DNA of 64,000 nucleotides from Macrostomum hystrix (lineage: Eukaryota; Animalia; Platyhelminthes). The stretch spans positions 1,922,001 through 1,986,000 of the forward strand of contig CATNEN010000015.1 of assembly GCA_950097015.1 (NCBI GenBank). The letters are read 5' to 3'. Position 1 is the stretch's first letter. Each line of letters opens with the position of its first letter. Below, piece by piece: positions 7,608-57,200 of this stretch. Made by a program: the position numbers and the translations under genes. The notes under the pieces were generated by a model. It was not told where the DNA came from. It made no database searches and saw only the letters and a list, made by a program, of their open reading frames with translations.

Positions 7608-7810
7608 AAACATTGCTTCATTGCATTGCTTCAGTTCACCCAGCTGTTAAATCAACTAGTTAATTCACCCAATCACCCAGGGGTAATTGAGGTTAATTTG
7701 GCGTCTTTCCTGTCCATGGACTGAATAGCCGCACGCAGTCTTAGCTGCGGCTGTGCTGTCGGCTGCACATCTGACCCATTATGTGCAGGTGTAATAAATT
7801 ACTATTATTA
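7608..7810 (+). mobile_element. SINE family 1, 5'-truncated copy
   Basis: Reverse-complement match to 16328-16520 (CATTGCTTCAGTTCACCCAGCTG...TCCATGGACTG...GCAGGTGTAAT plus an AT-rich tail). Confidence 0.8.
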
Positions 7811-15805: not shown

Positions 15806-16327
15806 AAAAGAATTGATGTAATTCACACTATTCCCAATATCAACTTAGCTATTTAGGAACGAATTACTCTTTTAAGTGTAAAGCATAGAGTTGAAAATTA
15901 TAGCCAATAGATAAAATGTATTGTAACATTATATATATATATATGTATATATGCACAGTCAGTGATCTTTATGCAATTGTACAAACTCTTGACTGCTCAG
16001 TCTTATGATATAGCTGTCATAAATAATTGTTGAAAAATAAATTAGAAGGGAAAATTTATGTTTAGGTTGAGTAGGTTGAGAATAAAATATATTGAGCTTG
16101 CTCTTCACCAAAAGGTCAAACTTTTTAAGGTATACATACATAGAAAAAATATTAACTTTATAATAGTTTTGTTGCATTTATGTTTTACAATTATTTATCA
16201 ATGTAAGCATTTAAGAATGGAATCAAATTTGATAATAGCTAACAATAGCCAAGTTGTTTTTATGAATAGGCAAACACAGTCTAAGTACTGTGTTTGCTTT
16301 TGCTTTTCTTAATAATTATTATAATAA

Positions 16328-16620
16328 TTGATTACACCTGCCCCAATTGGGTCAGATGTGCAGCCGACAGCACAGCCGCAGCTAATGGGCGGCGCATCTG
16401 AAGGCTGTGTACAGCTGTTCAGTCCATGGACTGGGGGGATGCCATACCCACCTTCAATTATCCCAGCTGATGCTGGTACCCATTTAACAGCTGGGTGAAC
16501 TGAAGCAATGCAGAGTTAAGTGTCTTGCTAAAGGACACAAATTGTTCAGTGGAGTTGCAAATTGAACCCCCGACCTTCAAGTCGTGAGTTCGATGCCCTT
16601 ACCACTAGGCTACAACCTCT
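16328..16620 (-). mobile_element. SINE family 1, near full length: tRNA-like head plus CORE/Meta-like central domain
   Basis: Minus strand has an A-box TAGCCTAGTGG and a B-box GGTTCAATT, then GTGTCCTTTAGCAAGACACTTAACTCTGCATTGCTTCAGTTCACCCAGCTGTTAAATGGGTACC and a 3' end ending GCAGGTGTAAT. Six related copies or fragments in the window. Confidence 0.85.
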
Positions 16621-17850: not shown

Positions 17851-20259
17851 TTATATATCTTTTGCTAGCGCTTTGCACGACTCAAAGAATCCGCCACTGG
17901 CGTCATACTCCGTGCTGGTGATGAAGGCGTCCACTTTGCTCTGAAAGTCTTTGTCCAGAATCTTCTGCATTGTTGCGTCAACTTTGGGATCCGGGGCTGA
18001 CGGCTCCGACGGGCCGTTGATGCTGTTGAGCTGGCGGTCAACCTGGCTGTCCAGCATCTTGATCAGACCGCCCAGCTGATCTGAGGCTGCCGTGCGGGTC
18101 TTGGTCACAGACACGCTCACGGATTTGCTTTCGGATTTGCTCTCGGATTTGCTCTCGGTTTTGGTCTCGGATTTGCTCTCCGATTTGCTTTTGGATTTGC
18201 TCTCGGATTTGCTCTCGGATTTGCTCTCGGATTTGCTCTCGGATTTGCTCTCGGATTTGCTGACAGCCGCAGCCACGGAAATGGCTTCTTTTGCTTCAGA
18301 CTTCTCCTCAGCGGTTTTGCTCTCTACTTTGATGTTGTTCTCAGTCTTTGCGGTGTCTTCCTCCTCCGTCCTGACTTCCGCCTTCTGCTGCTCATCAACT
18401 TTGCTTTCGGCCTTGCTAACAGATGCTGAAAATGACACAGCCTTGATTTCTGCCTTTTGCTTGACATCTGCTTTGCTCTTCTCCTCGGCCTTGACCTCCT
18501 TCTTGACCTCGGCTGTGACCTCCATCTTGGTTTTCTCCTCGACCTTCGCTTCAGCTTTATTGACAGCCACGGCGACAGCCAAGCCCTTGCTTTCGGATTT
18601 CTGCTGCTCCTTCACTTCGACCTTCTTCTTTTCCTCGGCCTTGACATCGGTCTTGACCTCTGCTTTCACTTGAGTTGTTTTCTTCTCTTCGACTTTCGCT
18701 TCAGTCTTGCTGGCAGCCACAGCAATACCCAGAGCAAGGCCATTGCTTGCAACTTTCTGCCTTTCCTTAACCTCGACTTTCTGTTTCTCCTCGGTCTTGG
18801 CCTCGGCCTTGACTTCGAATTTCTTTTTTTCTTTAACTTTGACTTCAACCTTTTTCTCATCCTCGACTTTCTCCTCAGCCTTATTGATAGCCACGGCCAC
18901 AGCCAAGCCCTTGCTTTCTGCTTTGCGCTTCTCTTTCACTTCGACCTTCTGCTTCTCCTCGGCCTTGACCTCGGCCTTGACCTCGGCCTTTTTCTTCTCC
19001 TCGACCTTCGCCTCGGTGCTGCTCGCAGCCACAGACACACTAAGTGCCAGGCCGCTACTCTCCGGTTTCTGCTTTTCCTTGATCTCAGCCTTTACTTCAG
19101 CCTTATTCTTTTCTTCTACTTTGACTTCAAGCTTGTTCTTGTCCTCCGCTTTTGCTTCAGATTTGTTTGCTGCTACCGCCACCGCCACCGCCACGGCCTT
19201 GCTGCCCTCTTTCTGCTTCTCTTCGACCTTGACCTCGACCTTTGTCTTCTCCTCGGCATTGACATCCGCCTTGACCGCGACCTTCTCCTTCTCGGTCTGC
19301 TTCAGTTCAGCTTTCGCATCCGTCTTGGCCGCGGCAACAACAACCACAGCCTCCTTGACCACCTCCTGCCTCACCTCAACCCGTGGCGACTCGCGTCGCT
19401 CAGGCTGCAGAACGACCTTCTTCTCCTCCTGCACCTGGATGAGAGCCCCAGTCTTGTGCTGTACGATGGGCTCCAGGTGCTTACGCTGCTCAGCCTTCTC
19501 TGTGACCTGGATCACCGTAGCGTCTCTGGCCTGAGTCTTCTCCACCACTCGCCTGTCCTCCTGCTTCACTTCTTCAGCCTTCTGAGCTACGAGGACGGCC
19601 TCTGAAGTCTGCTCGACTGGCTCCAGAATAATCTTCCGGCCTCTGGGTGATAGGCGCTCGTTTCGCTGCTCGACAACCACCTGAGTCTCCTGCTTCTCGT
19701 GCCAGTTCTCATTGCCGATGCGCATCACCTTCCTACTGCCAGCCTTCTCTTCCTCCTGCTCGCGGATGACGGCGGCAGCGAGCACGGGCGGCTGGTTCTC
19801 GTGCCAGCTCTCGTTGCCAATCCGCATCTTCTTCCGGGTGCCGACCCGCCTGTCCAGCGTGTTGGCCTGCGGCGCGATCACCGTTCGCTGCTTCTCGTGC
19901 CAGTTCTCGCTGCCGACTCGCATGACCTTTTTAGTGCCGACAGTGTCTTCCTCGACGCGCTCCTTGACAGCAGCGGCCTGTGTCTCGTGCCAGTTCTCGC
20001 TGCCAACTCGCATGATCTTCCTACTCCCAACCTGTTCCTCGACGGGCTCTTCAACAACCGTCGTCTTCTTCTCGTGCCAGTTCTCGCTGCCGATTCTCAT
20101 TGTCTTTTTGGTTCCGGCGGTGTCTTCTACAGCTTCGGCTCGCTCGATCTCCGCCCAGGTGCCGCCCAGTCGCATCTTCTTCACGTTCGGATTGGCCACC
20201 TTGGATTGCGAGTCGGCCTGCGGGAGATACGCGAAGCAATTGTGAAACCCAAGCACTAA
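17851..20259 (-). CDS. Uncharacterised roughly 800-aa Lys/Glu/Val/Ala-rich repetitive protein (one large exon; 5' exon not located)
   Basis: 2.4-kb GC-rich open frame with protein-level (not DNA-perfect) repeats: five copies of (R/K)KxMR(I/V)G(S/N)E(N/S)WHE plus one degenerate copy, many AVAVA..K(A/T)EAKVEEKKK blocks, an (SESK)n run and a short non-repetitive C-terminus. Acceptor cctttag at about 20260. Confidence 0.8.
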
Positions 20260-21009
20260 AGGTGACGAGGAGATTGAAACACAATGGCAGAACGAGACAA
20301 TTGGTTCCCTTAAGCCTAGCAATTCATTCGCATAATTTTAGTATCAGCTGGTCCACGGACACTAGAAAAAGCATTAGTTCTGCTGTTTTTAAAACCGAAA
20401 AAACAGTTCATGTGGAAACTGCAAAAAGCCTATTTTAAACGAAAGATGAAAATTGCAGGCAAAGTGGAATTTTTTCTCGGAGAATCAAAAAACAAGCCGC
20501 ACAGGCAGTCTTTGAGTCGCCAGAGAACTATAGTGCACTTTTTTCACCGCTGTTCCCAGCCTCTGCATCTTGGAAGGCCCGCGCAACCCCCCCATATTCT
20601 GGGAGCCGTTTGGTTTCCAAAGCAAGAGGAACAACTCAGACCTACCTCACTGCTTCAGCATGCATTGTTTTCCATGGGGACGCATGCCCTGGCAGTGGGG
20701 AAGCGAGCCACTCTCTCCCCGCCACAGCCATTGTGCAAACTCTTCCCGTCTTCCCCTGGAGTGGGATTTCGCAGTACTGCAGTACTGGAAGAAACACGGG
20801 AGAATTCAATTGAGAGTCGAGCGCAAGTGTGAAAACCGTGAGCTTTTCCTTAGTAACCACGTTTGTTTCAATTTGCTCGCTTATAAAGTTTAAGCATACT
20901 CGTACTTTTACCTTCTTTTGGTATTTGGCAATGCTTAAGCTTAAGCTTGAGGAACGATCATTACAATCATTACAGATTCCATCATATTAATACTGCTGGT
21001 ATAACATCT

Positions 21010-26547: not shown

Positions 26548-29500
26548 CTAGCAACAAGAGCCGAGCTTCTTACTGCCTTCGGCGCTTTCCTTCAGCTGAA
26601 CCGCCGACGCTCCGCTGCAGCTGCCTCCGCCGCGCATCAGCTCGGCGTCCTCGCGTTCCCATAGCAACCTGCACAGCTGCTCCACCGTGGAGCCGACGTG
26701 CCAACCTGACGCGGCGCTCGTCTCCACGAACATCGCCGCCTCCAAGGACTCGGCCAGGCGGGCTCCTTCGGAGGTGTCCACTCCGCGGCCCCTGCTGGCG
26801 TCGAGGCCCCGGAGGTCGGCCTTGTTGCCGGCCAGCACCACCGGAATGCCGGGCTCGGCACATTCGCGAATCGATTCCATCCAGTCGCGGGCGCTCAGGA
26901 AGGAGCGCTCGTGCGTGCAGTCGTACATCAGGATGACACCGTCGGCCCGACGGAAATAGGACTTGGCGATGCTGCGGAAGCGCTCCTGTGGAAGAGAGTG
27001 AAATTGACAATAATTGCCGTTATTCTGGGCGTGCTGGAATGGCAATAATAATAACTTAAGGGCTGCGGGCACTGGCACATCATTTGGTGACACTGGACTC
27101 GCAGCCAGCGAGGAGGCAATTCTGCCCATTTCGCTGACTCCTGAGCACACACGCACACAGATACCGTACGCAGGCACACGCTCACACAGGTGCGTACATC
27201 TGCCCTGACTTTTTATCATTAGACAGTGTACACTCTCACTGTGGCCTTGGAGGTTGTGTACGCATGAAGCGCGCTTTCTGACGTCTGACGAAGAAAGAAC
27301 GTCTGACGTCTGTTGTTGTTGTTGTTGTTGTTTTTGTTGTTGTTGCTGTTGTTGTTGTTGCTTGTTTTCTTAATGGTTGGTCCGCAGGGGCGCAAATTTT
27401 ACGACAAGCCCCAAAGTCAAAATTAATGTGAGTTCAGGGACCACCTTGGTGCGAGAGGCAAACGCGTTAGAGCTCTGCTACTCGCCCCCTCTAGATCTGA
27501 CAATGACCTCATCTTTTAGTTCTCAGTCTTGTTTAAATTTAGAAACTTTCAGTTAAATTTCTAGTGTGGCCCTTGTTTATGATTAAAGTTATTGTTGGTA
27601 TAATATAATTGAAGACATTCAAATTTTGAGAACGATTTCAATGAGAATGTAAAAAAATTTTCCTTTTGCAAGACCCTTAACTCTGCGTTGATTCAGCTCA
27701 CCCAGCTGTTGATAGGCATCAGCATCAGCTGGGGGAATTAAGAATGGGGGTGGCGTCCCACCTGTCCATGGACTGAACAGCCGTACACAGCCTTCACATG
27801 CGCCGCGCAATCGCTGCGGCTGTGCCGTCAGCTGCAAGTATGGCTGATGCGGGCAGGTGTAATAAAAAGTCTATTAATTTGTCGATGCAGTAAGCTTTAG
27901 TAGTCGGGATTTGAAAATTAAACCAATTATTTTTCCTTTCAATTAAGAAAAGAAACATTTTTGCGATGGCAGTGGAAGAATTTAAATTGTTTTTGTCGAT
28001 ATGCATTTTTGGAACTCTAACATTAGCCATGCCGTAAGTAGAATGTGACAACTCTTTTCTGGTCTTCACCCAAGCCACACATTTTAAGACCATACATGGT
28101 AGAGAAAACAATAGTATTTCGCCACGGCTAGAGAAGTGGCTAAAAAATACGGGCTTTGAATTTGTTGGCTACAATTTACCAACCGGAGTCTCAGCCCCAC
28201 CCGACTCCACGGCGACCACACTGAGCTCAAGGGGCTGCCAACCTCAGTCCATAGTTGGAGTCTAGCAGTGACTCATGAACTGGGACTTCACTCCATGGGA
28301 CTTAAGCACTTTGGAACTGTACACTGTAAGTTTTAAGTCCTCCGGCCTCGGGTCAAACTGTCTGCTATTAGCAAGTTCGTAAACAAAGTTAAACTGTTTT
28401 TTTGTTTTTTACTCTTTTTGTTTAACAAAACTTTATGGCTCTTAAAATTTAATTCATTCTGTAACAGGGTCATATCACACAGATTTAGCTGAATCCCACC
28501 CAATCCAGCGCTGCCTATTCTCACCTGTCCAGCGGTATCCCAGAGCTGCACGGCCACCACTCGACCGTCTACCATCAGCGTCCGGGTCTTAAAGTCCACC
28601 CCCAGAGTGGCGGTGGTGTTGGCCGTGAAGCGACCGTCGCAGAAGCGGCCTATGAAGCTGCTCTTGCCCACCGCGGCATCACCGGCCAATACCACCTTGA
28701 ACATCCGCTCAGGTGGAGACATTATGGACACCTCCGCTATTGAACCCGTCTCGCTCTCAGCCTCAGTCTCCGCTTCCTGACGTCCCGACGGTGGCGACTG
28801 CGGACACCTTCGCAGCTGAGGTCGTCGACGGCTACTGCGCAGCGGCTGCCTGCGACGGATGACTCCGTTGCTACCCGCAAAGTCGGAGTTGCAGTCGTCA
28901 AAATCCTGCGGGGCGGGGCTGCGCTCCCGACGCCCGCACTCAACCAGCGTCTCTCGCGTGGAGTGAAGACCCTCGTAGTCATCCTCAGCGTGGTCGCCGT
29001 CGTCTTCAAATTCAAATCCAATGGCGCCGCCTCCACGACCGCCGAACGGTATGACGAAGTGATCGGGAAAGTCATCCGCAGCAGAGGCTACCGATGGCTG
29101 ACGATGGTCGTCGCGACACGTCGACATGCCACTGTCGACCTCCTCATCTTCTTCGTCCTCCTCTGCGAAGGTTCCCACCCTTCGCTCTGCTTCCTCATCG
29201 AAGTTGTCCTCGATCGCGGCGGAGGTACCGATGCTACTCACTGGGCGGCAGAAGCTGCCCCGGCCAGATGACGGTGTGATGGCGCCACCGCCGCCGCCGC
29301 TGCTGACGCCACTTATTTGTCTTTCTAGGGCACAACGAAGGCTGTCATTGGTGTCACTCAGGCTGCGGTTTGCCTGCTGGAGCATTCGCAGCTGCATCGC
29401 GAGCTGCTCCTGATCGCGCTGGTAGCTCTGGAGGCTGCGTCGCTCCGCCAGCAGCTCGCGTGTTCGGCCCTCTTGATCCTGGCGCATGCGGGCAAGCTCG

Positions 29501-30420
29501 CTGCGACTCACCGCCAGGGCCGTTTCCAGCCGCTGCATGTCTGCCAGGAGGCTGCGGTTGCGCTCGCGAGTTTCTTGAACACTGCGGCGCAGACCAATCT
29601 CAGAGTTTTCGTCTGCGGCCTCTTCTCTGCCTCTCCGCTGCTGCAGTTCGTCTATCATGGTCTGCAGCTCGCTGATTTCAGCCTGCTTCCTGTCCAGCAG
29701 GTCCTGGTATTGCTCCGCCAGCCGCCGTCTCTCCTGCGCTCTCGCTCGCTGCTCCATCTTCGTCATCTGGATCTCCATTTCCTCCTCTAGCTGGCGGACG
29801 TGGCTGTCATTCGCAGCCTTCGCCCTGGCGAAGGCCTCTTCGAGGCGTTGGCGCTCTCGGCGTTGAGCACCGACCTCCTTTGCCGCGCTAACAATGATGG
29901 ACTCAAAGCTGTCCACCAGTTGCGGGTACTGGCGCTGTAGAAGGCAGTGAAGCTCGCACACCTTCTCCTGGCAGCTGAGCTGCTGCAGACCCTCCGTCAG
30001 CTGCTGCTCGAGATCAGAACTGCTCACGCTGCGCTGCTGCTGGAGCTCCGGCCTCGATGGCACGACTGATTCGTCAATGTCTAGCAGGCGCTCCTGTGAG
30101 AATGCCTTCATGCTGAGCGAGCTTCCTGCGGCATCCGCTGCAAGTTGCTGCTGCTGCTGCTGAAGCTGCCGAGACGCCAACGACAGGCTGATGGCCCTGA
30201 ACCCGGCCTGGAAGTCCGCCTCGTCCACTCGTCCATCGCCATCGGCATCCAACTGAGCGAAGATCTGGCGCACCTCGGCTGGCCGAAGATTGCCATCACA
30301 GCAGCGGGCGAGGTCATCCTCGGTGATGAAGCCGCAGCTGCCAGTGTCCAGCAGGCTGAACAACGAGGCCGCACGCTGAGATTCCGTCAAGCCGATTTTG
30401 TCGTCTGTCATTGTTGTCAT
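26548..30420 (-). CDS. RASEF: Ras and EF-hand domain-containing large Rab GTPase (RASEF/Rab45-like); exons 30420-28525 and 26985-26548 (about 777 aa)
   Basis: N-terminal EF-hands (FSLLDTGSCGFITEDDL; FAQLDADGDGRVDEADF), a long coiled coil, and a Rab domain (GDAAVGKS, TLGVDF, WDTAGQ|ERFRS, GNKADL, ETSA) with a C-terminal CC prenylation motif. The intron joins in phase 0. Confidence 0.93.
27045..27482 (-). mobile_element. SINE family 2 copy split by an insertion (27045-27257 body and tail; 27385-27482 head)
   Basis: Both halves align to 24232-24545 in reverse complement. Confidence 0.8.
27258..27375 (+). mobile_element. Short 5'-truncated retroposon 3' end with (TGT)n tail, inserted in the SINE
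   Basis: GCGC..CTGACG...(TGT)n resembles the LINE 3' end at 63590-63690 (minus). GGTTG is present on both sides as a possible TSD. Confidence 0.55.
27662..27875 (+). mobile_element. SINE family 1 copy in the RASEF intron
   Basis: GCAAGACCCTTAACTCTGCG...CACCCAGCTG...TCCATGGACTGAACAG...GCAGGTGTAAT. Confidence 0.8.
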
Positions 30421-32081
30421 GCAGCTCAAGGTGTGCTAGTGGTAGTCAGATGCAGTGCGGTGTGGCGGCACAGCATGTCAGGGCACAAAGGCAGGCCTTT
30501 TGTGCTAGCACTAGCTGAGCAAGCCGAAACTCAGGAGTCAAGAGTTCCCAGAGAGAGCGGGCAGAATGTGAGATTAAATGGAAGCAGCCGAACGATTTGG
30601 CCCAATAGTTTCCTTGCCAGAGCGGACAGTCCGCGTTCTCAAGCTAGCTTGCTGCTGCTTTTGCTTGCCCAGCGGAAGACTGCGCGAGAGGGCGAGGGCA
30701 CAGCCCGGCAAGTCGCACGTTTTTCTTCTCCTAGGCTTCAAAGCAATCTCTTGATCGGGCTAGCGGGGGAATTATCGATCCGGATCGATAGTTTTCGCTA
30801 GCTGAAAATGAGCGCATACGGGATTTCAGCCGAGCCGGGTTGGAGCTCTCGCTCACCGGCCCTGAGCGACGCGGCGACGCGGGGAGCAAGAGTCCTCTAA
30901 AGAATCGAGAGACACGAGTTGCATGACTGGGAAAACAATGGAGAAACACTCAAAATGCATTTGCAATTGAAACGAGTTGATAATAAAAGTGCTTCCGCCC
31001 GGAGCCTCGTTTGAGGGCTATTTTGGTACGAAGTATTTTATATCCGTTTTATTTAGTGCGACACTTTACGAGTATTGCCTCGAAATTGAGCTAAAAATAG
31101 GCACACACCCAGACGCTTGCCAAATATTAAACCACTCGTGCTCAAGTCTGCAGCTGGGAAAAAAATCCCATGCTTTTTAATGATCCTGTTTAATTCCGTG
31201 GCACTTTGTCTAGTCATAAAAAGCCTATAGCCCGACTCTTGAACTGACAAGAATGACAGGTTTTGTTCTGCAGCGACCAATTGTCGTTTCTTGTTAAATT
31301 TTGTGACTCCGAAATTAAATTATGTGATAATTCATAGCTTGACTAAAGTATAAGAATAGCTTTTGCCAGGCACAGGCTAAAATGTTCGCCTTATCCGATG
31401 AAAAAACTTCCAGAATCACAAAATACTATGCTTCGTCGTGATATCCAACGATTCTTGTAGGGGTGTCTGGTGGCTGAAACCACCACTAAGATACAGACAG
31501 AATTTTTATGCTCACAAATTATCATTATGCTCACATATCGGCTATTACTGTAGATTGTTTCGCATTGCTTGTATTGTTAATTTTTTCATTTCTAAACCAC
31601 AATGGATTCATCGCCAAAATTTTCCGTACAACTTTTGAGGAGGAAATTTAGCGCACTAAATTCGCTTTAAAGCTACTAAAAGTAGTTTTGTCAGAAATTC
31701 GTCAAATCTAGATTTTTATCAAAAAAGTACGAGCATCGCAAATATGGAAGAGACAGATATAGATACAGAAGATATAGAAGATCAGTTAAGTTAAAAATTT
31801 TTGGCTCAAAACTTTAGACGACACGAGACAGCAGTATGATTGCTTAGGCTCAGAAAAATGTTTGCTGAGTGAGCTGCAAGGCACGTAGGCGCACCGGATG
31901 TTAGCCTTAGTGCAAGCCGGAAGCGACTCCCAAAATCCCAAACCTGCAGTTGCGCTTTTTCTCCACACTGTATGCTCCTAGCTACTGTATGCTACTGTAC
32001 GCTAGTGACTACCTGATAACTGAAGCGGATAAAAGCATTGTGCGTAAGCAGACTTGCTCAAGTTTTTAGTTGTTTGCCCGC

Positions 32082-35392: not shown

Positions 35393-38300
35393 ATGGCAGC
35401 CGTGGAGTTGCAGCCGGTTAAAAGGGCCGAGCATTCGAGCTCAACTCCCAGCAGGCCGTCAACCCAGTCTGGCTACCGGTTTGGCCAGCTGTCGCGGAGT
35501 TCCTTCTTTGCCAGGCACAACCCGCATCCGCACAGGTGCATCCACATCAAGGGCCTGCTCGGACTCCCCATCCCAGTTGTTGTCGACGACTGCGATCACA
35601 GCAGGTGCGTCCCAATGTTCCCAATGCTGATCATTAGGAAAACATCTTCAGTGATGGACTGAAAGGAGTAATCTTTGAGGACTGGTGGGGTGAGGAAGGG
35701 ACTGATATTCAGGGACAGGTGGGTTGTGAAAGGGACTCATCTTCAGGGGCTAATTGGTGTGGAAGGGGCTAATCTTCAGGGGCTAATTGGTGTGGAAGGG
35801 ACTAATCTTCAGGGGCTAATTGGTGTGGAAGGGACTAATCTTCAGGTGCTAATTGGTGTGGAAGGGACTAATCTTCAGGGGCTAATTGGTGTGGAAGGGA
35901 CTAATCTTCAGGGGCTAATTGGTGTGGATTGGACTAATCTTCAGGGACTGCATGGTGGGTTGTGGAAGGGACTAATCTTCAGGGGCTAATTGGTGTGGAA
36001 GGGACTAATCTTCAGGTGCTAATTGGTGTGGAAGGGACTAATCTTCAGGGGCTAATTGGTGTGGAAGGGACTAATCTTCAGGGGCTAATTGGTGTGGAAG
36101 GGACTAATCTTCAGGGGCTAATTGGTGTGGAAGGGACTAATCTTCAGGGGCTAATTGGTGTGGATGGGGCTAATCTTCAGGGACTGGTGGGTTGTGGAAG
36201 GAACTAATATTCTGGGACAGGTGGGGTGTGGAAGGGACTAATATTCTGGGACTGGTGGGTTGTGGAAGGGACTAATCTTCAGGGACAGGTGGGGTGTGGA
36301 AGGGACTAATATTCTGGGACTGGTGGGTTATGGAAGGGACTAATCTTCAGGAAAATATAGAGGTAGGAAGTGATTGATGTTTATGGTCTGACAGAGTATG
36401 GAAGTAACGCTGGTAAATCCCCAAATCACACCACCAGCTACGAAACGCACCTTTGTTTCCCGCCCAACGGGCACAATGAGCAAAAGTTGGCCAGCCAGAG
36501 ACTAATGTTGCCCGTGAACGCTATTCACCTGAACTCACACAAACACCCACTGGACACGGTGAACGGACTGCAGTACTTCACCAATCTGAGGAACTACTCC
36601 TTCAAGGAGAAGGCTGTGCCACGCCTGGGCCTAGTTCCAGTTACGGAGAGCTGGCGAGAGCAGCTGAGAAGCCTCACTGAACAGACCTTTCATCCAGAGG
36701 CCATTGGTGCCGCGGTTTCGGCCGTCGGAGCGAATGGTCGCGGCGGCGACCTGACTATGCGGCGGGGTGAGTTACACTTGGCTCTCGATTGGGGACGGGA
36801 TCAATTTAGGGAATACGGGATAAGACAAATTGGAATGGAAGAGGACGGGATGGGACAAATTGGAATGGAAGAGGACGGGATGGGACAAATTGGAATGGAA
36901 GAGGACGGGATGGGACAAATTGGAATGGAAGAGGACGGGATGGGACAAATTGGAATGGAAGAGGATGGGATGGGACAAATTGGAATGGAAGAGGATGGGA
37001 TGGGACAAATTGGAATGGAAGAAGACGGACACGATGAATCGAAATGGGACAAGATAGGACAGGATGGGACAGGATAGGACAGGATGGGACGGGATAGGAC
37101 AGGATGGGACAGGATTGGACAGGATAGGACAGGATGGGACGGGATAGGACAGGATGGGACGGGATGGGACAGGATGGGACAGGATGGGACAGGATGGGAC
37201 AGGATGGGACAGGATGGAACAGGATGGGACAGGATGGGACAGGATAGGACAGGATACGACAGGATGGGATGTGATAGGACAGGATGGGACAGGATGGGAC
37301 AGGATAGGACAGGATGGGACGGGATAGGAAATGATTGGACAGGATGGGACAGGATAGGACAGGATGGGACGGGATAGGACAGGATGGGACGTGATAGGAC
37401 AGGATGGGACAGGATGGGACAGGATGGGACGGGATGGGACAGGATGGGACAGGATGGGACAGGATGGGACAGGATAGGACAGGATGGGACGGGATAGGAC
37501 AGGATGGGACAGGATGGGACAGGATAGGACAGGATGGGACGGGATAGGACAGGATGGGACGGGATGGGACAGGATGGGACAGGATGGGACAGGATAGGAC
37601 AGGATGGGACGGGATAGGACAGGATGGGACAGGATGGGACGGGATGGGACAGGATGGGACAGGATAGGACAGGATGGGACGGGATGGGACAGGATGGGAC
37701 AGGATAGGACAGGATGGGACGGGATAGGACAGGATGGGACAGGATGGGACAGGATGGGACGTGATGGGACAGGATGGGACAGGATGGGACAGGATGGGAC
37801 AGGATGGGACGGGATAGGACAGGATGGGACAGGATGGGACAGGATGGGACAGGATGGGACAGGATGGGACAGGATGGGACAGGATGGGACGGGATGGGAC
37901 AGGATGGGACAGGATAGGACAGGATGGGACGGGATGGGACAGGATGGGACAGGATAGGACAGGATGGGACGGGATAGGACAGGATGGGACAGGATGGGAC
38001 AGGATGGGACGGGATGGGACAGGATGGGACAGGATAGGACATGATGGGACGGGATAGGACAGGATGGGACGGGATGGGACGGGATAAGACGGGATGGGTC
38101 GAGATGCGAGAAGTAACAGAAAGGATATTCTGATTTTTGTACTTCTTGTAAAAAATACGAGCTTATTGGTGCAGTTGGCAAAAATGCACCAGACTCAACA
38201 CTAACAAACTTACAAATGTTTTCACAAACCAGCTGAAAATCGGTCACCAAACTAAACTAATCTAAACCAATGATCCAACGAAGTAGCGAAAATTAGGGCA

Positions 38301-41300
38301 CAAATTAGGTCATCATCTATGGGGGCTAGCCGAAATATATCGTGCCTTAGAGAACAGGTTTAAATGCGAAGAAAATTCTCTGAAAAAAACGACGGAGCTT
38401 TTGATTTCAGACAGATGCACCTATTGCGCTTTGCATAGCTTTCGTATTTAGGACAGAAGGACAGCCGGTGTCCAATAGTAAACAAAATAGATTTTGTTTG
38501 ACGCGAAGTGTGAGTCATCAAATACGGCTGGAAGGGTCGGGCGATACTGTCGAATCTGATTGGCTCTGACGGGATAGACAGGCGGCGGGACTGTGTGCAT
38601 TCATCATAGCCTGTTTTTCTCACGCCCCTAGGGTCTGAAGGCGTGAGGTGTGATGCCCAGCCAATCAAATTTCGCCAAATTACCCTCCATTAAGTCGCGT
38701 CACCCTAGCTAGCGCAGATAAGAATATCAAATTCACAGTTTTTAAGTGTGGGTTAAAAAAAATTTATTGACTCCATTAAAGTATATTAATTGACTCTCTG
38801 CCTTCCGGAACCACCCTATAAAAATACCTGATTCAATATTGCGCTGCGGAAAAAGAACCATCAAGCTCAGATTCTGCAAAAAAATCATGAAAACTAACAC
38901 CGTCTGGCTGGGCTTGTTGGCCCTGTCCTATACGCTATGCCTTGCGGTTTCGCATGGCGAAGTGGCCGGAACCAACACCTACGAGACTTACGACCAGCCT
39001 TACCGCTCCTCATCCGGTGGCAAGAGCTACGGCAAGCCTTCTGACGATGGCTACGGCAAGGGCTACGGCAAAGGGTCTGACGACGGCTACCGCAAGGGCT
39101 ACGGCAAAGGGTCTGACGATGGCTACGGCAAGGGCTACGGCAAATCCTCTGACGATGGCTACGGCAAGGGCTACGGCAAAGGGTCTGACGATGGCTACGG
39201 CAAGGGCTACGGCAAAGGGTCTGACGATGGCTACGGCAAGGGCTACGGCAAAGGGTCTGACGATGGCTACGGCAAGGGCTACGGCAAATCCTCTGACGAC
39301 GGCTACCGCAAGGGCTACGGCAAAGAGTCTGACGATGGCTACGGCAAAGGGTCTGACGATGGCTACGGCAAGGGCTACGGCAAAGGGTCTGACGACGGCT
39401 ACGGCAAGGGCTACGGCAAAGGGTCTGACGACGGCTACGGCAAGGGCTACGGCAAAGGGTACGGCAAGCCTTCTGACGACGGCTACGGCAAGGGCTACGG
39501 CAAAAGGTCTGACGACGGCTACGGCAAGGGCTACGGCAAAGGGTCTGACGACGGCTACGGCAAAGGGTCTGACGACGGCTACGGCAAAGGGTCTGACGAC
39601 GGCTACGGCAAAGGGTCTGACGACGGCTACGGCAAGGGCTACGGCAAAGGATCTGACGACGGCTACGGCAAGGGCTACGGCAAAGGATCTGACGACGGCT
39701 ACGGCAAGGGCTACGGCAAAGGATCTGACGACGGCTACGGCAAGGGCTACGGCAAAGGGTCTGACGATGGCTACGGCAAGGGCTACGGCAAAGGATCTGA
39801 CGACGGCTACGGCAAGGGCTACGGCAAAGGGTCTGACGATGGCTACGGCAAGGGCTACGGCAAAGGGTCTGACGACGGCTACGGCAAGGGCTACGGCAAA
39901 GGGTCTGACGACGGCTACGGCAAGGGCTACGGCAAGGGCTACGGCAAGGGCTACGGCAAGGGCCATCATTCAAAGAGCAAGGGCTACGACAAATTGGCCT
40001 ATAATGATGGCTCCGACGACTACTATGGCTACGGTTCGGACTTCTCTGATCTGTTCGACGACTACGACTTTGATGACGACTACGACGATGACTATGACTA
40101 CGACGAGATAATCGAGGAAGAGTTCGATGACTATGGCAAGCCGCACGTGGTCAGCCACTACCTGGAGGGCAAGAACGGCTACAAGAAGGTGTTGTACGAG
40201 TCGCCATCGAATAAGTACGGCGACTACAAGTACGGCGACTACAAGTACGGCGACTCGAGCGACAGCTACGGCCCAGGCCAAGGGAGCAGCAGCAAGAAGG
40301 ATTACTAAATCTGATTGATTTTTAGTGATTGCTCACACCGATTTATTGATCATTTCCTTTGTTTTTGATTGTCTTCCACAAATACAGTCTATGAAAACTT
40401 CAAAGCTAGCTTTTGGACTCCATTTATTTAGCAGTCGAAAAAATTCGAGTTCTAAAAAATGGCGACTCTACTTAGGAATCAGAGTCCGTAGTAGTACGTG
40501 AGGCGTGTAAATGAAATCTTCGATTACTTCACAAGCGCTGTCATGTTTAGATGTCTAACTTCAGACCCTTATCTTAAAACGCTGGTGTGCTCCCCTTAAC
40601 TGCGCTTCAAAATGGCGGGCCTCTACTCAAGTATCGTTATTTCTAAAATAATTATTGATTACACCTGCCCCAATCGAGCCAGATGTACAGTCGACGGCAC
40701 AGCCGCAGTTATTGCGCGGCGAATCTGAAGGCTGCGTACAGCTGTTCAGTCCATGGACTGGGGGTTCGCAACACCCACCCCCAATTACCCCAACTAATGC
40801 TGGTACCCCTTTAAAACTGGGTGTGAAGCAATTTAGAGTTGAATTTCTAGCTTATGGGCAACAATAATAGTTCCAATGGATTCAAGAATCGAACCCATGA
40901 TCTTCAAGCCACAACCCCTAGAGTAGCGTAGAATCGCTTTAAACATTACTGGCTTACCGGCCCTCAAAACGTCCCTTCGAATCACTTTCCACCTGCAGAG
41001 GCCACCTACCCGAACACAGCGAGCCAGCAGCAGCCGCAGCAGCCGCAGACCGCCAGGCCGATGTACAGCCGCGACACCGGCCGTCTAATTCCACCGCCGT
41101 CGCGCGCAATGTCCCGCCGGCCACTGCGCTCCTCGCGCCGCGCCACCCCGGCCCACGTGCTGGCCGGCTACGAGCACATCAGCGCGGCGCCGGACCTGGA
41201 GTCCGCCGTGTTCAGCATGCTCTGCCAGATCCTGCAGACTGAGGATTTCAACGCCGTGCAGGCTTGGCTGGTCAGCGCCTCGGACCGGGAGAAGGCCCTC

Positions 41301-42994
41301 GTGATGGACGTCATCCGCTCGGCTGTGGCAAACAAGGCCGCTTACTATGAGGTGAGCCCCCGAAACACTACTAACAGTAGAAACACCAGGCTATTTCCCC
41401 TGAGGAAAGACCCGGGGGTATTTCAAATACCCACTGCCTACTTCGCTATGGCTCCCGAACCGAATGACCGAATTTTCCTGAAATTCCACCATCTGGATTA
41501 AAATTTTTCGCCCTTTACGATGAAATAACTTTCAAAGCCGTTCGATGTCAACATCGACGAGATATTCGGCGGTTCTTGTCGAAGACCCTGGTGACAAGGA
41601 CAAGTAACATTGCTCTGCATAAACCTCTTTGGCGAATCCACATTGATAAAGAAATGTAAAAATGAACAATTTAATCAACCCAAAATGGTCAATAATGATA
41701 GCCGACATGATTCATTTTTTGCCACCGCAACAAGAATCGTTGAATATCCCGATGATGCTGTGATTCTGGAAGTTGTTTCTTGGATAGAGCGGGAAATTTT
41801 TGCCCATGTTCTGGATTTTCATCGCGATTGGCTGAACATTTCGGTAGATAGAGGAAAAATATGAATTTTGGTATTTGAAATACCCCGTGGTGTTTCTAGG
41901 GTCAACAGACGATCTCATGAGTAGTTTAACATGAATAGGTAGCAAATCAGGTCGGTTGATGCATTCCTGGAGGTCAAGAAACATCCTAGAATGATGCGCA
42001 GGTAAAAATTACACATTAAAGATTCGAGTCAAGGATCACTTGGACCACCTCATTTCTTGGAAAAAATTTAGGCGGCTAATTTAAAAATACACATCGGATA
42101 TGGAAACTTTTCCATTTTCACTACATTATCAGGACACAGAGTATGGCATTTATACGCGCGTCTGCCTCTCGCACCAAGGTCCCTGAGTTCGATTCCGCAG
42201 TGAGGCCACACTAAATTGGGGCGCAGCCGTGGAGAGAGGGCTTGGGGGCTTGTCGTGCAATTTTTGCCATCGAGGGCCAACCTCCAAGGCACAGTGAAGT
42301 GTACACAGCTTGACGATGAGAAAGTCAGGGCAGATGTACACACCTGTGAGAGTGTGCCTGCATTTTTAAGGGAAGTAAGAATAGAGAAAATGATTCGGCT
42401 CCAATCAAACACAGTCACTGAATTTTTGCAGACAAAAAAAGTGAAAATTTCCTATCGCCGTTGTGTAAATTTTTGAGTGAACCAGACTTATATTTTTTTC
42501 TAAGAAACGTGGTCTCTGGTCCAGATGCATAACCAGTGGCAAAGCCTGCATTTGCATGCGTGTGTTTTTGGGTTAGCAAGGCCTACTGGCACACCTGGCT
42601 GGCAACCGCGTCACTCCCGCAGGCGGACCCCACCGGGGAGGCCTTCGAACCGACGAACATCCGCGAAGACCTGCGCCTGCCGCCAATCGCCGAGGATCCT
42701 GACCGGCCCAAGCGGGTGGACCGCCTGGTGATTGAAGACGCGGAGCGACCTGCCACTCATGAGCATCATCACCTGCACGAGGAGCTGCAGCCTCCTGTTC
42801 AGCAGCCTGAGGCAGCAGCCCCCGAGAATAAGCTCGAAGTGAAACCTGCGGCCGGGGCCAAGACATCGCGACAGGAGCAGCCGCAGCAGAAGACTCAGCA
42901 GCAGCAGCAGCAGCAGCAGCAGCCAAAACTGGCTCCCGGAGCCAAGGGCAAGAAGACTGGCAAACCAGTAAATGCCGGAGCAAAGTTGAAGTGA
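35393..42994 (+). CDS. TBATA: TBATA/SPATIAL-family protein; exons 35393-35604, about 36438-36766, 40999-41351, 42623-42994 (about 421 aa)
   Basis: N-terminal LSRSSFFARHNPHPHRCIHIKGLLGLPI, middle VTESWREQLRSL, and C-terminal MLCQILQTEDFNAVQAWLVSASDREKALV match the conserved TBATA-family blocks as I recall them. Junctions join in frame; the exon 2 acceptor is the least certain. Confidence 0.8.
35730..36350. repeat. 33-bp minisatellite GGAAGGGACTAATCTTCAGGGGCTAATTGGTGT (TBATA intron 1)
   Basis: About 18 copies, degenerating at both ends. Confidence 0.95.
36820..38095. repeat. 30-bp minisatellite (about 7 copies) followed by a (GGACA/GGATG/GGATA)n pentamer array
   Basis: Direct reading; lies in TBATA intron 2. 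Confidence 0.95.
38817..38823 (+). promoter_or_regulatory. TATA box of the nested Gly/Tyr-rich gene
   Basis: TATAAAA 70 bp upstream of the ATG at 38887. Confidence 0.6.
38887..40308 (+). CDS. Secreted Gly/Tyr/Lys/Asp-rich repeat protein (eggshell/vitelline-precursor-like), intronless, 473 aa, nested in TBATA intron 2
   Basis: Signal-peptide-like MKTNTVWLGLLALSYTLCLAVSHG, more than 20 SDDGYGKG(YGKG) units, an acidic D/Y-rich block and KYGDY repeats. Own TATA box and stop codon. Confidence 0.85.
   Translation: MKTNTVWLGLLALSYTLCLAVSHGEVAGTNTYETYDQPYRSSSGGKSYGKPSDDGYGKGYGKGSDDGYRKGYGKGSDDGYGKGYGKSSDDGYGKGYGKGSDDGYGKGYGKGSDDGYGKGYGKGSDDGYGKGYGKSSDDGYRKGYGKESDDGYGKGSDDGYGKGYGKGSDDGYGKGYGKGSDDGYGKGYGKGYGKPSDDGYGKGYGKRSDDGYGKGYGKGSDDGYGKGSDDGYGKGSDDGYGKGSDDGYGKGYGKGSDDGYGKGYGKGSDDGYGKGYGKGSDDGYGKGYGKGSDDGYGKGYGKGSDDGYGKGYGKGSDDGYGKGYGKGSDDGYGKGYGKGSDDGYGKGYGKGYGKGYGKGHHSKSKGYDKLAYNDGSDDYYGYGSDFSDLFDDYDFDDDYDDDYDYDEIIEEEFDDYGKPHVVSHYLEGKNGYKKVLYESPSNKYGDYKYGDYKYGDSSDSYGPGQGSSSKKDY
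40655..40910 (-). mobile_element. SINE family 1 copy
   Basis: TTGATTACACCTGCCCCAAT...CAGTCCATGGACTGG...GAACCCATGATCTTCAAG aligns to 16328-16590. Confidence 0.8.
41375..41901 (+). mobile_element. piggyBac-like non-autonomous element (about 527 bp) in TBATA intron 3
   Basis: Left end ctaa|CAGTAGAAACACC...GGGGTATTTCAAATACC. Right end GGTATTTGAAATACCCC..GGTGTTTCTAGGG|tcaa. The right end matches the piggyBac TIR start CCCTAGAAA; the flanks are degenerate TTAA. Confidence 0.7.
42155..42362 (+). mobile_element. SINE family 2 copy
   Basis: GCCTCTCGCACCAAGGTCCCTGAGTTCGATTCCGCAGTGAGGCCAC... aligns to 24255-24440. Confidence 0.8.
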
Positions 42995-45795: not shown

Positions 45796-46496
45796 TGTTA
45801 TTTGAGTGACAGACAAAGCTAAAAAGTGAGATTCGAAACTGCGCTGCTGCATGGTGAGATTATTGGACACTGACAATTTAATCAATACGGAACATGGGAT
45901 TTGAAACACAGGCGGATGTCCCGAGCTGACTCAGGGACAGAAAGACAGCAGCAAAACACGGCTGATGAATGCCAGAAAACAAATGATGCTGGCAAGACTT
46001 TGACGGCCAACGTGGCGGCCAGGAGGGCGGCGTCTGAATGAAAAACGAAATGCGGTCGCTGCTGCCACTGTCAGATGCGCTCAAATCTGGGAGCTGAGAT
46101 TGGGATTAAAATCTCCACTCCCCATTCATCCCCAAAGCCGGAGATCGCAGCATCCAATGAGCGACTCCGCATCCGACAGCTTGAGAATGCCGAGTAGGTC
46201 TATAAGGCTGCTCCGCAAAGGGAATCAGTTTATCCCTAATCAATAAGCTTGCCTGCCACCTGTCGATCGCAGCTGCTCAACCTCTTTCCCCCGCTCGAGT
46301 CAGCCGTCAAATTACGAAAATTCAGCACTACCAGCACCCGGCCGCCCAGTTAGCAGGTTGGGCGCCATTCAGGTGGACACCGGCACAGGTATTTCTGCAC
46401 GCACCGCCGCCGTCCTTTAACGAGCCTTCGCTAGCAGCCGAGTCTCCGCAGAGCACATATATCGCGCCGCGGTTCCGACACCTTCGACATCCAGCG

Positions 46497-48230
46497 ATGG
46501 TCAGCGGCGTCAACGGTCAGGAGGTCGCGGCCAAACCGGCCGAGCGGGATCGAATCAAGCTCTTTATCGGCCAGATCCCGCGCTCCATGGAGGAGGTCGA
46601 CCTGCGGCCGCTATTCGAAGAGTTCGGAGCCATCCTGGAGCTCACTGTGCTCAAGGACAAGTTCACCGGGGCGCACAAGGGTGAGCAGGACTGCTCATTT
46701 GAGCACTTGTCGCCTCTCAAAACAATTTGAGCACATGAGCCAGCATGATCCATGAGTGGTTTTCCATGGACTGAACACCTTCTAGCATTCTCAGCATCCT
46801 TTTCATGCTGGAGTAAGCTGTAAATGTATTAGGAAATAAAAAAAATTCTATTTTTTAAACAAAACGGAGCGCATTCGATTGGCACATGATGTACCCGACA
46901 CTGAGGTTTTAGCTCTGCCACTCTCTCCCTGCAAGTCAATGACGGGTGGCTTCCGCCGCAGCTGCTCCCTTCGCTGCCAGGAGTGGGAAAATAGCAGGGA
47001 GGGAATATTTCCCAGCCAGCCAAGTGAGTGGAAATCCTCAGCTGGGGTTGAGGGCTGCTGGCGGCTCCTCCGTCCACTACTTCCTGTCATCCTCTCTTCC
47101 TCTCGCTCCGTCCCGTGTCTCGCCAGAAGGGGTCCCTGTGATTTTTCTGGGGCTGAAGTAGCAGAGGAAAGACTCAATCTTATTGGGCATTATTGTAAAT
47201 CTAGGTTGGTGGTATGCAGGACTGGAAGGTCACGCCAGTTTAGTCCAGTGCTGACTTTGAGCACAGATTGAGCACATCGTGGGGAATGGGAGATTTCTGA
47301 CTGAATGACAGCGCAAAAGAAAGTTTCGCGTGCTTGGCGTAGCTTGAGGTAAAGGCATTGAAGGTGAGATTGAAGATAAAGACAGGTGAAGGTAATAGAT
47401 AAAGACAGATAAGATAGTAGATAAAGACAGATGAGACAGTAGATAAAGACTGGTGAGTTGTAGATAAAGAGATGTGAGACAGTAGATAAAAACAGGTGAG
47501 ACAGTAGATAAAGACAGATAAGACAGTAGATAAAGACAGTTGAGAGAGTAGATAAAGACAGTTGAGAGAGTAGATAAAGACAGATAAGACAGTAGATAAA
47601 GACAGGTGAGACAGTAGATAAAGACAGGTGAGACAGTAGATAAAGACAGGTGAGAGAGTAGATAAAGACAGGTGAGATAGTAGAAAGACAGATAAGACAG
47701 TAGATAAAGACAGATAAGACAGTAGATAAAGACAGATAAGACAGTAGATAAAGACAGGTGAGACAGTAGATAAAGACAGTTGAGACAGTAGATAAAGACA
47801 GATAAGACAGTAGATGAAGACAGGTGAGATAGTAGATAAAGACAGGTGAGATAGCAGATAAAGACAGGTGAGACAGTAGATGAAGACAGGTGAGACAGCA
47901 GATAAAGACAGGTGGAGGTGGTCGTGAGTGAAAGTTGAGACCATGGAGAATGAATTATGGCAGGCAACCTGTTGGGCACGGCAGGTAAAAATGCGCTGAG
48001 AAAACCGGATGGGTTCGTTAGTAACAAATGATGGCTTAAAGCAGAAGATGGAGCTAGAAGACAGATAAGACAGCTCGGGAAATTTTCAGAAAATTAAAAT
48101 TGATGCCATTCATTACCTGCCAAAGCTTTCTCCGCTTTGGAAGACGAAATATCTAGAAATTGGAGGCCAAAAAAGGAACCCTTCCCCTACTCTCTCGGGT
48201 GAAATGTAGGGGATTTCTTTTTCAGTCCGT

Positions 48231-54200: not shown

Positions 54201-57200
54201 GAGAGCTCAACCACTGCTCACCGGCTTGTTATTATTTAGGAGCGGATTGGGCGGAAGAATTCCTGCGGGATTTGAGCACAGGCCAGCAAAACCTGTGTTC
54301 TGCTTTTTGTTTCTTTTAGAAATAACCTGTTAGACTCCGTGCTATGATAGATTATCTGAGACTCCGTGGCAGATTCTGTGTGGCATCCTGTTAGATTCTG
54401 TGTGGCAGCCTGTTAGATTCTGTGTGGCATCCTGTTAGATTCTGTGTGGCATCCTGTTAGATTCTGTGTGGCATCCTGTTAGATTCTGTGTGGCATCCTG
54501 TTAGATTCTGTGTGGCATCCTGTTAGATTCTGTGTGGCATCCTGTTAGATTCTGTGTGGCATCCTGTTAGATTCTGTGTGGCAACCTGTTAGATTCTGTG
54601 TGTGGCATCCTGTTAGATTCTGTGTGGCAACCTGTTAGATTCTGTGTGGCATCCTGTTAGATTCTGTGTGGCAACCTGTTAGATTCTGTGTGGCATCCTG
54701 TTAGATTCTGTGTGGCATCCTGTTAGATTCTGTGTGGCATCCTGTTATTACCAGTTATGAATCCATGCCAATATCAAATGACTCATTCTATGACACCTGT
54801 CACCTGAATTTCATTTCAGGTTGCGCATTTCTCACCTACCTGCAGCGAGACTCAGCCATCAGGTGCCAGGGAGGCCTGCACGAGAAAAGGACTCTGCCTG
54901 GAGTGAGTTTGAGATCTCAGATGAGATTATAAGAGTTGATAAATTGATAAATTGAAAATCATGAGAGACGGTGAGAATTACATGAGAAAATAATGAGACA
55001 GATGAGAAAATGACAAGAACATAATGTGGGATGTAAGAGAAAATCATAGAAAACAAATAATAATTAAAAATCAGACAAATGATTTAGTACTCAACAAATC
55101 CTACTGCAAGTAGAGAAGTGAGTAAGTAGAGCTAAAATTCTATGAGGGAGGGAGATGACAGTAGCGAATAGGCGAACAATCAGTGCGGAAGAACAAGTTG
55201 GGCACATGTCGGACGACCAGCTTTGGACTGCCCCGTGGGACTGGGGGATGATGAGGCGAATGAAGCCAGCCGGCTGTTGTAAGCGAGAAGCTGAGCAGAC
55301 AGAAATGAAATTACCGGCCGAACAAGAGCGAAACCCGCATTCGGTGTCAAAATGCGATTACTTGCCTTTCTCAGGGAAATCTGAGCTTTCTCAGGGGACC
55401 GCGAGCAAAGCCGACTTCCTCTGGGGAGCCTGTTCATAATTGAAGGGCCTAATAAGGAAATGCCTGGAAATCCCAGATCCTACAGTGTGTTTCTACCCAA
55501 ATCCCAGATCCTACAGTGTGTTTCTACCCAAATCCAAAATCCTTCAGTGTGTTTCTACCCAAATCCCAAATCCTTCAGTGTGTTTCTACCCAAATCCCAA
55601 ATCCTTCAGTGTGTTTCTACCCAAATCCCAGATCCTTCTGTGTGTTTCTACCCAAATCCCAGATCCTTCTGTGTGCTTCTACCCAAATCCCAGATCCTTC
55701 TGTGTGTTTCTACCCACATCCCAGATCCTACAGTGTGTTTCTACCCACATCCCAGATCCTACAGTGTGTTTCTACCCAAATCCCAGATCCTTCAGTGTGT
55801 TTCTACCCAAATCCCAGATCCTTCTGTGTGTTTCTACCCAAATCCCAGATCCTTCAGTGTGTTTCTACCCAAATCCCAGATCCTTCTGTGTGCTTCTACC
55901 CAAATCCCAGATCCTTCTGTGTGTTTCTACCCACATCCCAGATCCTACAGTGTGTTTCTACCCACATCCCAGATCCTACAGTGTGTTTCTACCCAAATCC
56001 CAGATCCTACAGTGTGTTTCTACCCAAATCCCAGATCCTTCAGTGTGTTTCTACCCACATCCCAGATCCTACAGTGTGTTTCTACCCAAATCCCATATCC
56101 TCGTATAGATTCTACCCACATCCCAGATCCTACAGTGTGTTTCTACCCAAATCCCAGATCCTTCAGTGTGTTTCTACCCAAATCCCAGATCCTTCTGTGT
56201 GTTTCTACCCACATCCCAGATCCTACAGTGTGTTTCTACCCACATCCCAGATCCTACAGTGTGTTTCTACCCAAATCCCAGATCCTTCAGTGTGTTTCTA
56301 CCCAAATCCCAGATCCTTCTGTGTGTTTCTACCCAAATCCCAGATCCTTCAGTGTGTTTCTACCCAAATCCCAGATCCTTCTGTGTGCTTCTACCCAAAT
56401 CCCAGATCCTTCTGTGTGTTTCTACCCACATCCCAGATCCTACAGTGTGTTTCTACCCACATCCCAGATCCTACAGTGTGTTTCTACCCAAATCCCAGAT
56501 CCTACAGTGTGTTTCTACCCAAATCCCAGATCCTTCAGTGTGTTTCTACCCACATCCCAGATCCTACAGTGTGTTTCTACCCAAATCCCATATCCTCGTA
56601 TAGATTCTACCCACATCCCAGATCCTACAGTGTGTTTCTACCCAAATCCCAGATCCTTCTGTGTGCTTCTACCCAAATCCCAGATCCTTCTGTGTGTTTC
56701 TACCCACATCCCAGATCCTACAGTGTGTTTCTACCCACATCCCAGATCCTACAGTGTGTTTCTACCCAAATCCCAGATCCTTCAGTGTGTTTCTACCCAA
56801 ATCCCAGATCCTTCTGTGTGTTTCTACCCAAATCCCAGATCCTTCAGTGTGTTTCTACCCAAATCCCAGATCCTTCTGTGTGCTTCTACCCAAATCCCAG
56901 ATCCTTCTGTGTGTTTCTACCCACATCCCAGATCCTACAGTGTGTTTCTACCCACATCCCAGATCCTACAGTGTGTTTCTACCCAAATCCCAGATCCTAC
57001 AGTGTGTTTCTACCCAAATCCCAGATCCTTCAGTGTGTTTCTACCCACATCCCAGATCCTACAGTGTGTTTCTACCCAAATCCCATATCCTCGTATAGAT
57101 TCTACCCACATCCCAGATCCTACAGTGTGTTTCTACCCAAATCCCAGATCCTTCAGTGTGTTTCTACCCACATCCCAGATCCTACAGTGTGTTTCTACCC

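Follow-up and report, generated by a model that had tools for sequence, protein, structure and literature searches.

The genome of Macrostomum hystrix, a free-living flatworm and simultaneous hermaphrodite, carries a predicted gene for a secreted, repetitive, Gly/Tyr-rich protein that lies wholly within an intron, and on the same strand, of a gene of the TBATA/SPATIAL family. These two genes, referred to below as the guest and the host, respectively, are located on contig 15 of the Machtx_v2 assembly (42 contigs, 220,453,370 bases; PMC10468722), at 1,960,887-1,962,308 and 1,957,393-1,963,352, respectively, in the 64,000-nucleotide stretch from 1,922,001 to 1,986,000 that is called the window here and whose first base is position 1 of all coordinates given without a contig or locus name. 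Intronless genes of a similar kind are found at the same place in two further TBATA/SPATIAL genes of this genome, on contigs 25 and 38.

The predicted nested gene and its host

The guest coding sequence (38887-40308, plus strand) is uninterrupted by introns and comprises 473 codons and a stop codon at 40306-40308. An in-frame TGA is found 96 nt upstream of the ATG, and the ATG at 38887 is the first one past the TATA box. The first 24 residues (38887-38958) have the appearance of a signal peptide, with a basic n-region that contains Lys, a hydrophobic core of 12 residues (mean Kyte-Doolittle value of 2.2), and S-H-G at positions -3 to -1; here and in the other guests, signal peptides were judged by the hydrophobic core and the -3/-1 rule and not by a predictor. 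No hydrophobic stretch is found in the protein outside this N-terminal core. Its composition is dominated by Gly (29.6%), Asp (16.3%), Tyr (16.1%), Lys (14.0%), and Ser (10.1%), and the mature protein is free of Cys.

A tandem array with a period of 36 nt, i.e., 12 residues (39019-39963, 26.2 copies as delimited by Tandem Repeats Finder), encodes 22 units of the full length of 12 residues and 4 shorter ones of 8 residues, all of the SDDGYGKGYGKG type. The repeat part contains 54 Lys/Arg and 53 Asp/Glu residues, which makes it a neutral polyampholyte with a net charge of approximately zero. Strong acidity (net charge of -18) marks the C-terminal 111 residues, which include an acidic Asp/Tyr/Phe block (approximately 40003-40134) and finish in three KYGDY repeats (40213-40255, Tandem Repeats Finder). 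A non-repeat block within this part (residues 406-449, 40102-40233) was found by BLASTP to be common to the guest on contig 25 (see below). The initial annotation of this locus had described an intronless 473-residue open reading frame (ORF) with a signal peptide, repeats, an acidic Asp/Tyr block, and KYGDY repeats, in agreement with the ORF, N-terminus, and repeat analyses; the TATA box that it assigned to the guest is present as TATAAAA (38817-38823, plus strand), 70 nt ahead of the ATG.

The host gene, also on the plus strand, was searched exon by exon, and the joined three-exon model was translated as a frame check. Exon 1 (35393-35604) begins with the ATG at 35393, ends in phase 2, and is followed by the donor CAG/GTGCGT. 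Exon 2 (36438-36766) has a CAG acceptor after a C-rich tract and a GTGAGT donor and ends in phase 1. Exon 3 (40999-41352) follows a CAG acceptor, completes the split codon with its two first bases, and is followed by a GTGAGC donor. The positions where exon 2 ends and exon 3 starts coincide with those proposed in the initial annotation. In the 35393-35659 frame, residues 38-72 match positions 1-35 of the Pfam profile PF15256 (39.3 bits), and positions 114-201 match the 41061-41501 frame, which overlaps exon 3 (80.7 bits, with a cut-off of 27 in both cases); a six-frame search of the genome placed profile positions 1-42 at 35504-35635 and positions 98-201 at 41016-41330. By these scores, which exceed the gathering threshold, the host is assigned to the TBATA/SPATIAL family (PF15256). 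Since the first part of the profile lies upstream of the guest and the rest of it downstream, a single PF15256 domain appears to be split around the guest. Exon 2 gave no Pfam match by itself. It is required in the model because the phases do not allow exon 1 to be spliced directly to exon 3, and its 5' end at 36438 is inferred from phase arithmetic and the frame check. Exon 2 motifs recognizable in the paralogues include PLDT.NGL.Y on contig 25 (E value of 0.03) and WR..L..L...TF on contig 38 (E value of 0.5).

The resulting intron 2 (36767-40998; 4,232 nt) is approximately six times longer than the mean intron of the M. hystrix genome (692 nt; PMC10468722). The guest elements, from the upstream promoter motif to the putative poly(A) signal (38555-40386), are wholly contained in this intron, and the guest with its promoter takes up 35% of it. 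The 5' third of the intron contains tandem arrays (36815-38106, Tandem Repeats Finder) that consist of 7 copies of a 30-nt unit (36815-37028) and 106 copies of the 10-nt unit ATGGGACAGG (37044-38106). Downstream of the guest there is a copy of a dispersed repeat of ∼200 to 250 nt (40630-40864), similar copies of which are found in the window at 16312-16598, 27622-27897, and 7676-7798, as well as in both paralogous blocks; to the eye, this copy resembles a tRNA, but none was detected in it by ARAGORN. Host intron 1 carries a tandem array of its own (35689-36351; 33-nt unit, ∼20 copies), and an array of unrelated sequence is present in intron 1 of the paralogue on contig 38 (L020:6180-6660).

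On this evidence, the guest is predicted to be nested on the same strand within intron 2 of a TBATA/SPATIAL gene, as the initial annotation had it. The alternative would be that the flanking TBATA exons belong to separate transcripts, either of two genes or of a host broken by an insertion, so that there is no true nesting. The lack of a Pfam match to exon 2 agrees with such a scheme, which would have to account, however, for a single Pfam domain that is divided with its frames intact between consensus splice sites of matching phases. The same split is also seen in both paralogues, and three independent breaks at one place would be a most unlikely coincidence. This alternative is therefore considered very improbable.

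Paralogous nests on contigs 25 and 38

The two further SPATIAL loci of the genome are contained in a 9-kb stretch of contig 38 (L020) and a 10-kb stretch of contig 25 (L021), with the nests at around 11,362,500-11,366,900 of contig 38 and 3,711,900-3,715,100 of contig 25. In each of them, an intronless ORF with a signal peptide lies, on the host strand, between the last two of the three host parts that could be mapped. On contig 25, the host parts are found at L021:7054-6980, 6925-6878, and 4044-3925 (minus strand) and the guest, an ORF of 163 codons, at L021:5648-5157 (minus strand). The predicted protein consists of the signal peptide, a block similar to residues 406-449 of the window guest, and SYGYGDD-type repeats, in that order. 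In this block, 30 of the 44 residues (68%) are identical to those of the window guest (BLASTP E value of 2e-17), which was the sole other match when the block was searched against the M. hystrix genome. The parts of this paralogue that resemble host exons 1 and 2 are found in one continuous open frame (L021:6632-7447, minus strand); its intron 1 seems to be either absent or retained in frame.

On contig 38, the host parts are located at L020:6779-6690, 5890-5732, and 2662-2510 (minus strand). The guest between the last two of them is an ORF of 549 codons at L020:5027-3378 (minus strand), which corresponds to approximately 11,363,377-11,365,026 of the contig. It encodes a Tyr/Asp/Asn/Pro/Lys unit of 16 residues that is repeated about 30 times, with Pro, Asn, and Tyr contents of 23, 21, and 15%, respectively, and no sequence that could be aligned with either of the other two guests was found in it. 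The repeat units of the three guests are quite different. All three proteins contain 15 to 18% Tyr, lack Cys downstream of the signal peptide, and carry a net acidic charge (-12 to -17).

The repeat array of the window guest is open in all six frames, and the genome abounds in satellites that translate to Gly/Tyr-like repeats, so the openness of the ORF proves nothing by itself. A search of the genome with the whole guest protein returned 119 matches; those that were opened proved to be such satellites and were rejected as paralogues. These properties would be expected if the guest ORF were not a gene but an intronic minisatellite that merely looks coding (the MINISATELLITE question). A minisatellite, however, would hardly come with a signal peptide, non-repeat ends, a TATA box, and a Y-box, or share its non-repeat block with a paralogue. 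The codons of that block in the window and contig-25 guests (dN of 0.20, dS of 0.67, and dN/dS of ∼0.3) indicate purifying selection. Furthermore, the differences between the individual repeat units and their consensus show an excess of synonymous changes only in the frame of the guest (15 synonymous to 6 non-synonymous, versus 3 to 20 and 1 to 22 in the other two frames), although this is a weak test, as the differences are inherited and represent only about four kinds each of synonymous and non-synonymous change. By its signal peptide, promoter elements, non-repeat ends, and a paralogue under apparent purifying selection, the 38887-40308 region is best described as a real gene, and the minisatellite explanation appears scarcely credible.

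The neighborhoods of the three hosts are related as well. Open frames of the window were compared with 49 to 50 kb around each paralogue (contig 25, 3,688,000-3,738,000; contig 38, 11,340,000-11,389,000), and at least four genes or frames proved to be common to all three blocks, in the same order and orientation. Besides the host, they include a gene for a protein with EF-hand and Ras/Rab-type GTPase domains, identified by Pfam upstream of TBATA (26551-30435, minus strand), a frame with an RRM domain (46206-46727, plus strand), and a further frame at 54705-54929 (plus strand). The dS values between the host blocks are saturated (1.2 to 1.7), indicating that the duplications are old. As each block carries a guest between the same host parts, the nest appears to predate the triplication. 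Judging from the shared gene order, the three blocks suggest that this lineage went through two ancient duplications, either segmental or of the whole genome, in the course of which the arrangement appears to have been stable and all three guest ORFs have stayed intact.

Conserved pairs of host and guest genes are rare. In the two known systems that come closest, SYN1-TIMP1, SYN2-TIMP4, and SYN3-TIMP3 (PMC2825198) and CTNNA1-3 with LRRTM1-3 (PMC3933685), a guest is likewise kept in a particular host intron in each of three paralogues. Location on the opposite strand, the most common arrangement of nested genes (PMC3933685), characterizes the synapsin/TIMP and alpha-catenin/LRRTM pairs, whereas the TBATA guests are on the host strand in all three copies; transcription of the host must therefore pass the promoter and the poly(A) site of the guest. 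The TBATA guests have also diverged in sequence far more than the guests of these two systems. Thus, nested pairs that are kept in three paralogues are already known with guests on the opposite strand, and what appears to be new here is such a pair with the guest on the same strand. It could serve as a test bed for three questions: what the host polymerase does on meeting a promoter and a poly(A) site inside the gene, whether the expression of two genes becomes coupled by nesting, and at what rate a repetitive structural protein can diverge at a fixed genomic address.

One could go further and propose that TBATA and its Tyr-rich guest form a functionally coupled unit that was selected to stay nested on the same strand through both duplications, with, for example, transcription of one gene gating that of the other by promoter occlusion or read-through. 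If so, a simultaneous hermaphrodite would have a built-in either/or switch between a cilia/sperm-type program and a secretory one. Retention by itself does not demonstrate selection on the nesting, since whole blocks were retained, and such coupling is regarded as decidedly unlikely.

Promoter elements and predicted transcription of the guests

In addition to the TATA box, the window guest is preceded by the 11-mer TCTGATTGGCT, a Y-box or inverted CCAAT box, at 38555-38565 (plus strand), 332 nt ahead of the ATG. Both paralogous guests are preceded by the same 11-mer in gene orientation (at -268 and -248) and by a TATA-like element (at -88 and -90). The 64-kb window, the L020 stretch, and the L021 stretch each contain a single copy of the 11-mer. 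Genome-wide, there are 2,996 copies of it (approximately one per 74 kb), as opposed to 53 copies of the reversed control, a ∼56-fold difference, and by this count TCTGATTGGCT is a genuinely used element in this genome. It is also found in regular tandem arrays, such as the one on contig 1 (5,384,501-5,385,107), where it recurs every 24 nt. An alignment of the three guest promoters revealed nothing alignable beyond the Y-box.

Given the conservation of these promoter elements, the guest and the host would be separate transcription units. An operon-like arrangement, with the guest devoid of a promoter of its own and cut from the primary transcript of the host by spliced-leader trans-splicing or intronic cleavage, would have precedents, as spliced-leader trans-splicing affects 10 to 20% of M. 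hystrix genes and polycistronic units exist in this species (PMC10468722). The orientation of the guest along the host strand, conserved three times, would suit this arrangement, and there is an AG 17 nt before the guest ATG, though with no pyrimidine tract ahead of it. Such processing would leave unexplained why all three guests have a TATA or TATA-like box 70 to 90 nt and a Y-box 248 to 332 nt ahead of the ATG, with a spacing that is the geometry expected of an ordinary RNA polymerase II promoter. The operon-like scheme is accordingly viewed as quite improbable, and separate transcription from the guest's own promoter is preferred.

On the 3' side of the window guest, the stretch from the stop codon to the host acceptor (40300-41000) contains neither AATAAA nor ATTAAA, and the nearest hexamer resembling a poly(A) signal is a putative AATACA at +73 (40381-40386, plus strand). 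The contig-25 guest has only an AATATA at +34, and the contig-38 guest has both ATTAAA and AATAAA within 400 nt. The hexamers thus suggest an inner poly(A) signal that is weak and inconsistent across the three guests. The initial annotation had remarked that same-strand nesting would need mutually exclusive expression or suppression of the inner poly(A) site, and its point about the poly(A) site is sound in principle; RNA polymerase transcribing the host would have to read through the guest, perhaps aided by the weakness of its poly(A) signal.

Possible functions of the guests

Databases offered little guidance as to what the guests do. A word search, which covers proteins of 260 to 828 amino acids and scores the 8,000 best word-sharing candidates, retrieved with the whole window guest only phage- or bacteria-like low-complexity proteins and no trematode match, and no true relative was retrieved with its C-terminal 111 residues or with the conserved contig-25 guest block. 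When 1.84 billion representatives were searched with a profile of this block, only four matches came up, all of them short and spurious. There was no usable match in the ESM Atlas, nothing below an E value of 0.1 in the Protein Data Bank, and no Pfam domain above threshold, with KRTAP seen only below it. An exact look-up in a collection of 15 billion proteins found none of the three guests, so that the lack of relatives says little about other Macrostomum species.

In its overall character, the window guest resembles the eggshell precursors of trematodes (p14, p19, and p48 of Schistosoma and the vitelline proteins of Fasciola), which are also secreted, repetitive, and rich in Gly and Tyr. Those precursors are packed into granules and cross-linked by tyrosinase. 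The Tyr and Gly contents of the window guest fall between those of p14 (11% Tyr, 44% Gly) and p48 (26% Tyr, 15% Gly; PMC3499410). The guest differs from the trematode proteins in being far richer in Asp, with a repeat part of zero net charge, and has no detectable sequence similarity to them in the size range covered by the word search. The two groups also differ in anatomy: Macrostomum has no vitellaria, and its eggshell granules are made in the oocytes, with shell glands and cement glands surrounding the female antrum (PMC4490696).

The DOPA-based adhesives of marine animals, such as the mussel foot proteins and the cement proteins of the sandcastle worm, offer a second parallel. They consist of tandem series of short units in which Tyr, Gly, and Lys are abundant, are stored as dense fluids in granules, and are cured by oxidation of Tyr. 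The 16-residue Pro/Asn/Tyr/Lys unit of the contig-38 guest is reminiscent of the Pro/Tyr/Lys decapeptide found in mussel foot protein 1. There is no sequence relation, and the known adhesives are strongly basic, in contrast to the net acidic guests.

Going by its composition, the window guest would be a sticky polyampholyte that is stored in secretory granules and in which Tyr residues act as stickers and Gly residues as spacers. Once released, it could be cured through Tyr oxidation of the tyrosinase type, Lys being the cross-linking partner. The cured product would be a tanned extracellular material, with the eggshell granules of the oocyte and the secretion of the shell or cement glands being the leading candidates. 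Tyrosinase domains scoring above the Pfam cut-off were found at three loci of the genome, which shows the presence of this enzyme family only. As judged from composition, storage of the guest in granules and its curing into tanned material is a tentative proposal that falls a little short of probable, and a role in the eggshell specifically is unlikely.

Alternatively, the guests could be male-side or other secretions unrelated to the eggshell, for example, proteins that the prostate glands add to the seminal fluid, parts of the hypodermic stylet apparatus, mucus of the epidermis or rhabdites, or material of the adhesive organs. They might be expressed together with the host in the same cells, as opposed to being mutually exclusive with it. 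Shared chromatin or co-expression would suit the same-strand layout in the three paralogues, and the differences among their repeat units are typical of rapidly evolving secretions. Genes of Macrostomum that are related to reproduction or expressed in the tail region show fast evolution and can be matched between species only with difficulty (PMC10468722), which is also true of the guests. On the other hand, the stylet of Macrostomum forms inside cells, which is difficult to reconcile with a signal peptide, and the published adhesive proteins of Macrostomum lignano are very large, multi-domain proteins, unlike the guest. A non-eggshell secretion is thus a possibility to be taken seriously, if a somewhat unlikely one.

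Taken together, the data favor, by a modest degree, a secreted guest that is transcribed from its own promoter, nested in TBATA in an old layout, and cured through its Tyr residues into an extracellular material. Several points weigh against this reading. Both the nest and the guest are predicted from sequence, the nest from the split domain, splice sites, phases, and paralogues, and the evidence for exon 2 is weak beyond the splice logic. The contig-38 guest shares with the others only position, strand, promoter elements, and amino acid bias. No homologue with a known role was found in the collections searched, the synonymous excess among the repeat units comes from the weak test mentioned above, and the proposed function is read from composition alone. 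Finally, the retention of whole blocks means that the nest can persist without functional coupling.

With regard to the initial interpretation, the predicted nested gene has been upheld, its layout being found in three paralogues instead of one, and the link to trematode eggshells does not extend beyond composition. The accompanying idea of a female-side gene inside a male-side gene is best treated as a hypothesis: expression of TBATA, a gene active in testis or ciliated cells in mammals, has been documented in mouse (PMC2964569), and no literature linking TBATA to flatworms was found. Likewise, no description of the molecular components of the tanned extracellular material of Macrostomum was found in the literature; the guests provide three candidate genes for it, be it eggshell, cement, or another secretion. 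Positional RNA-seq data for M. hystrix on the Machtx_v2 assembly already exist (PMC10468722; the genomic reads of that study are listed under PRJEB59187), which makes the main questions answerable without new experiments.

Elsewhere in the window, an orphan modular protein of ∼800 residues is encoded at 17854-20337 (minus strand). It has a relative in the contig-25 block, with 59% identity over 75 residues at the C-terminal end, and is therefore not a singleton.

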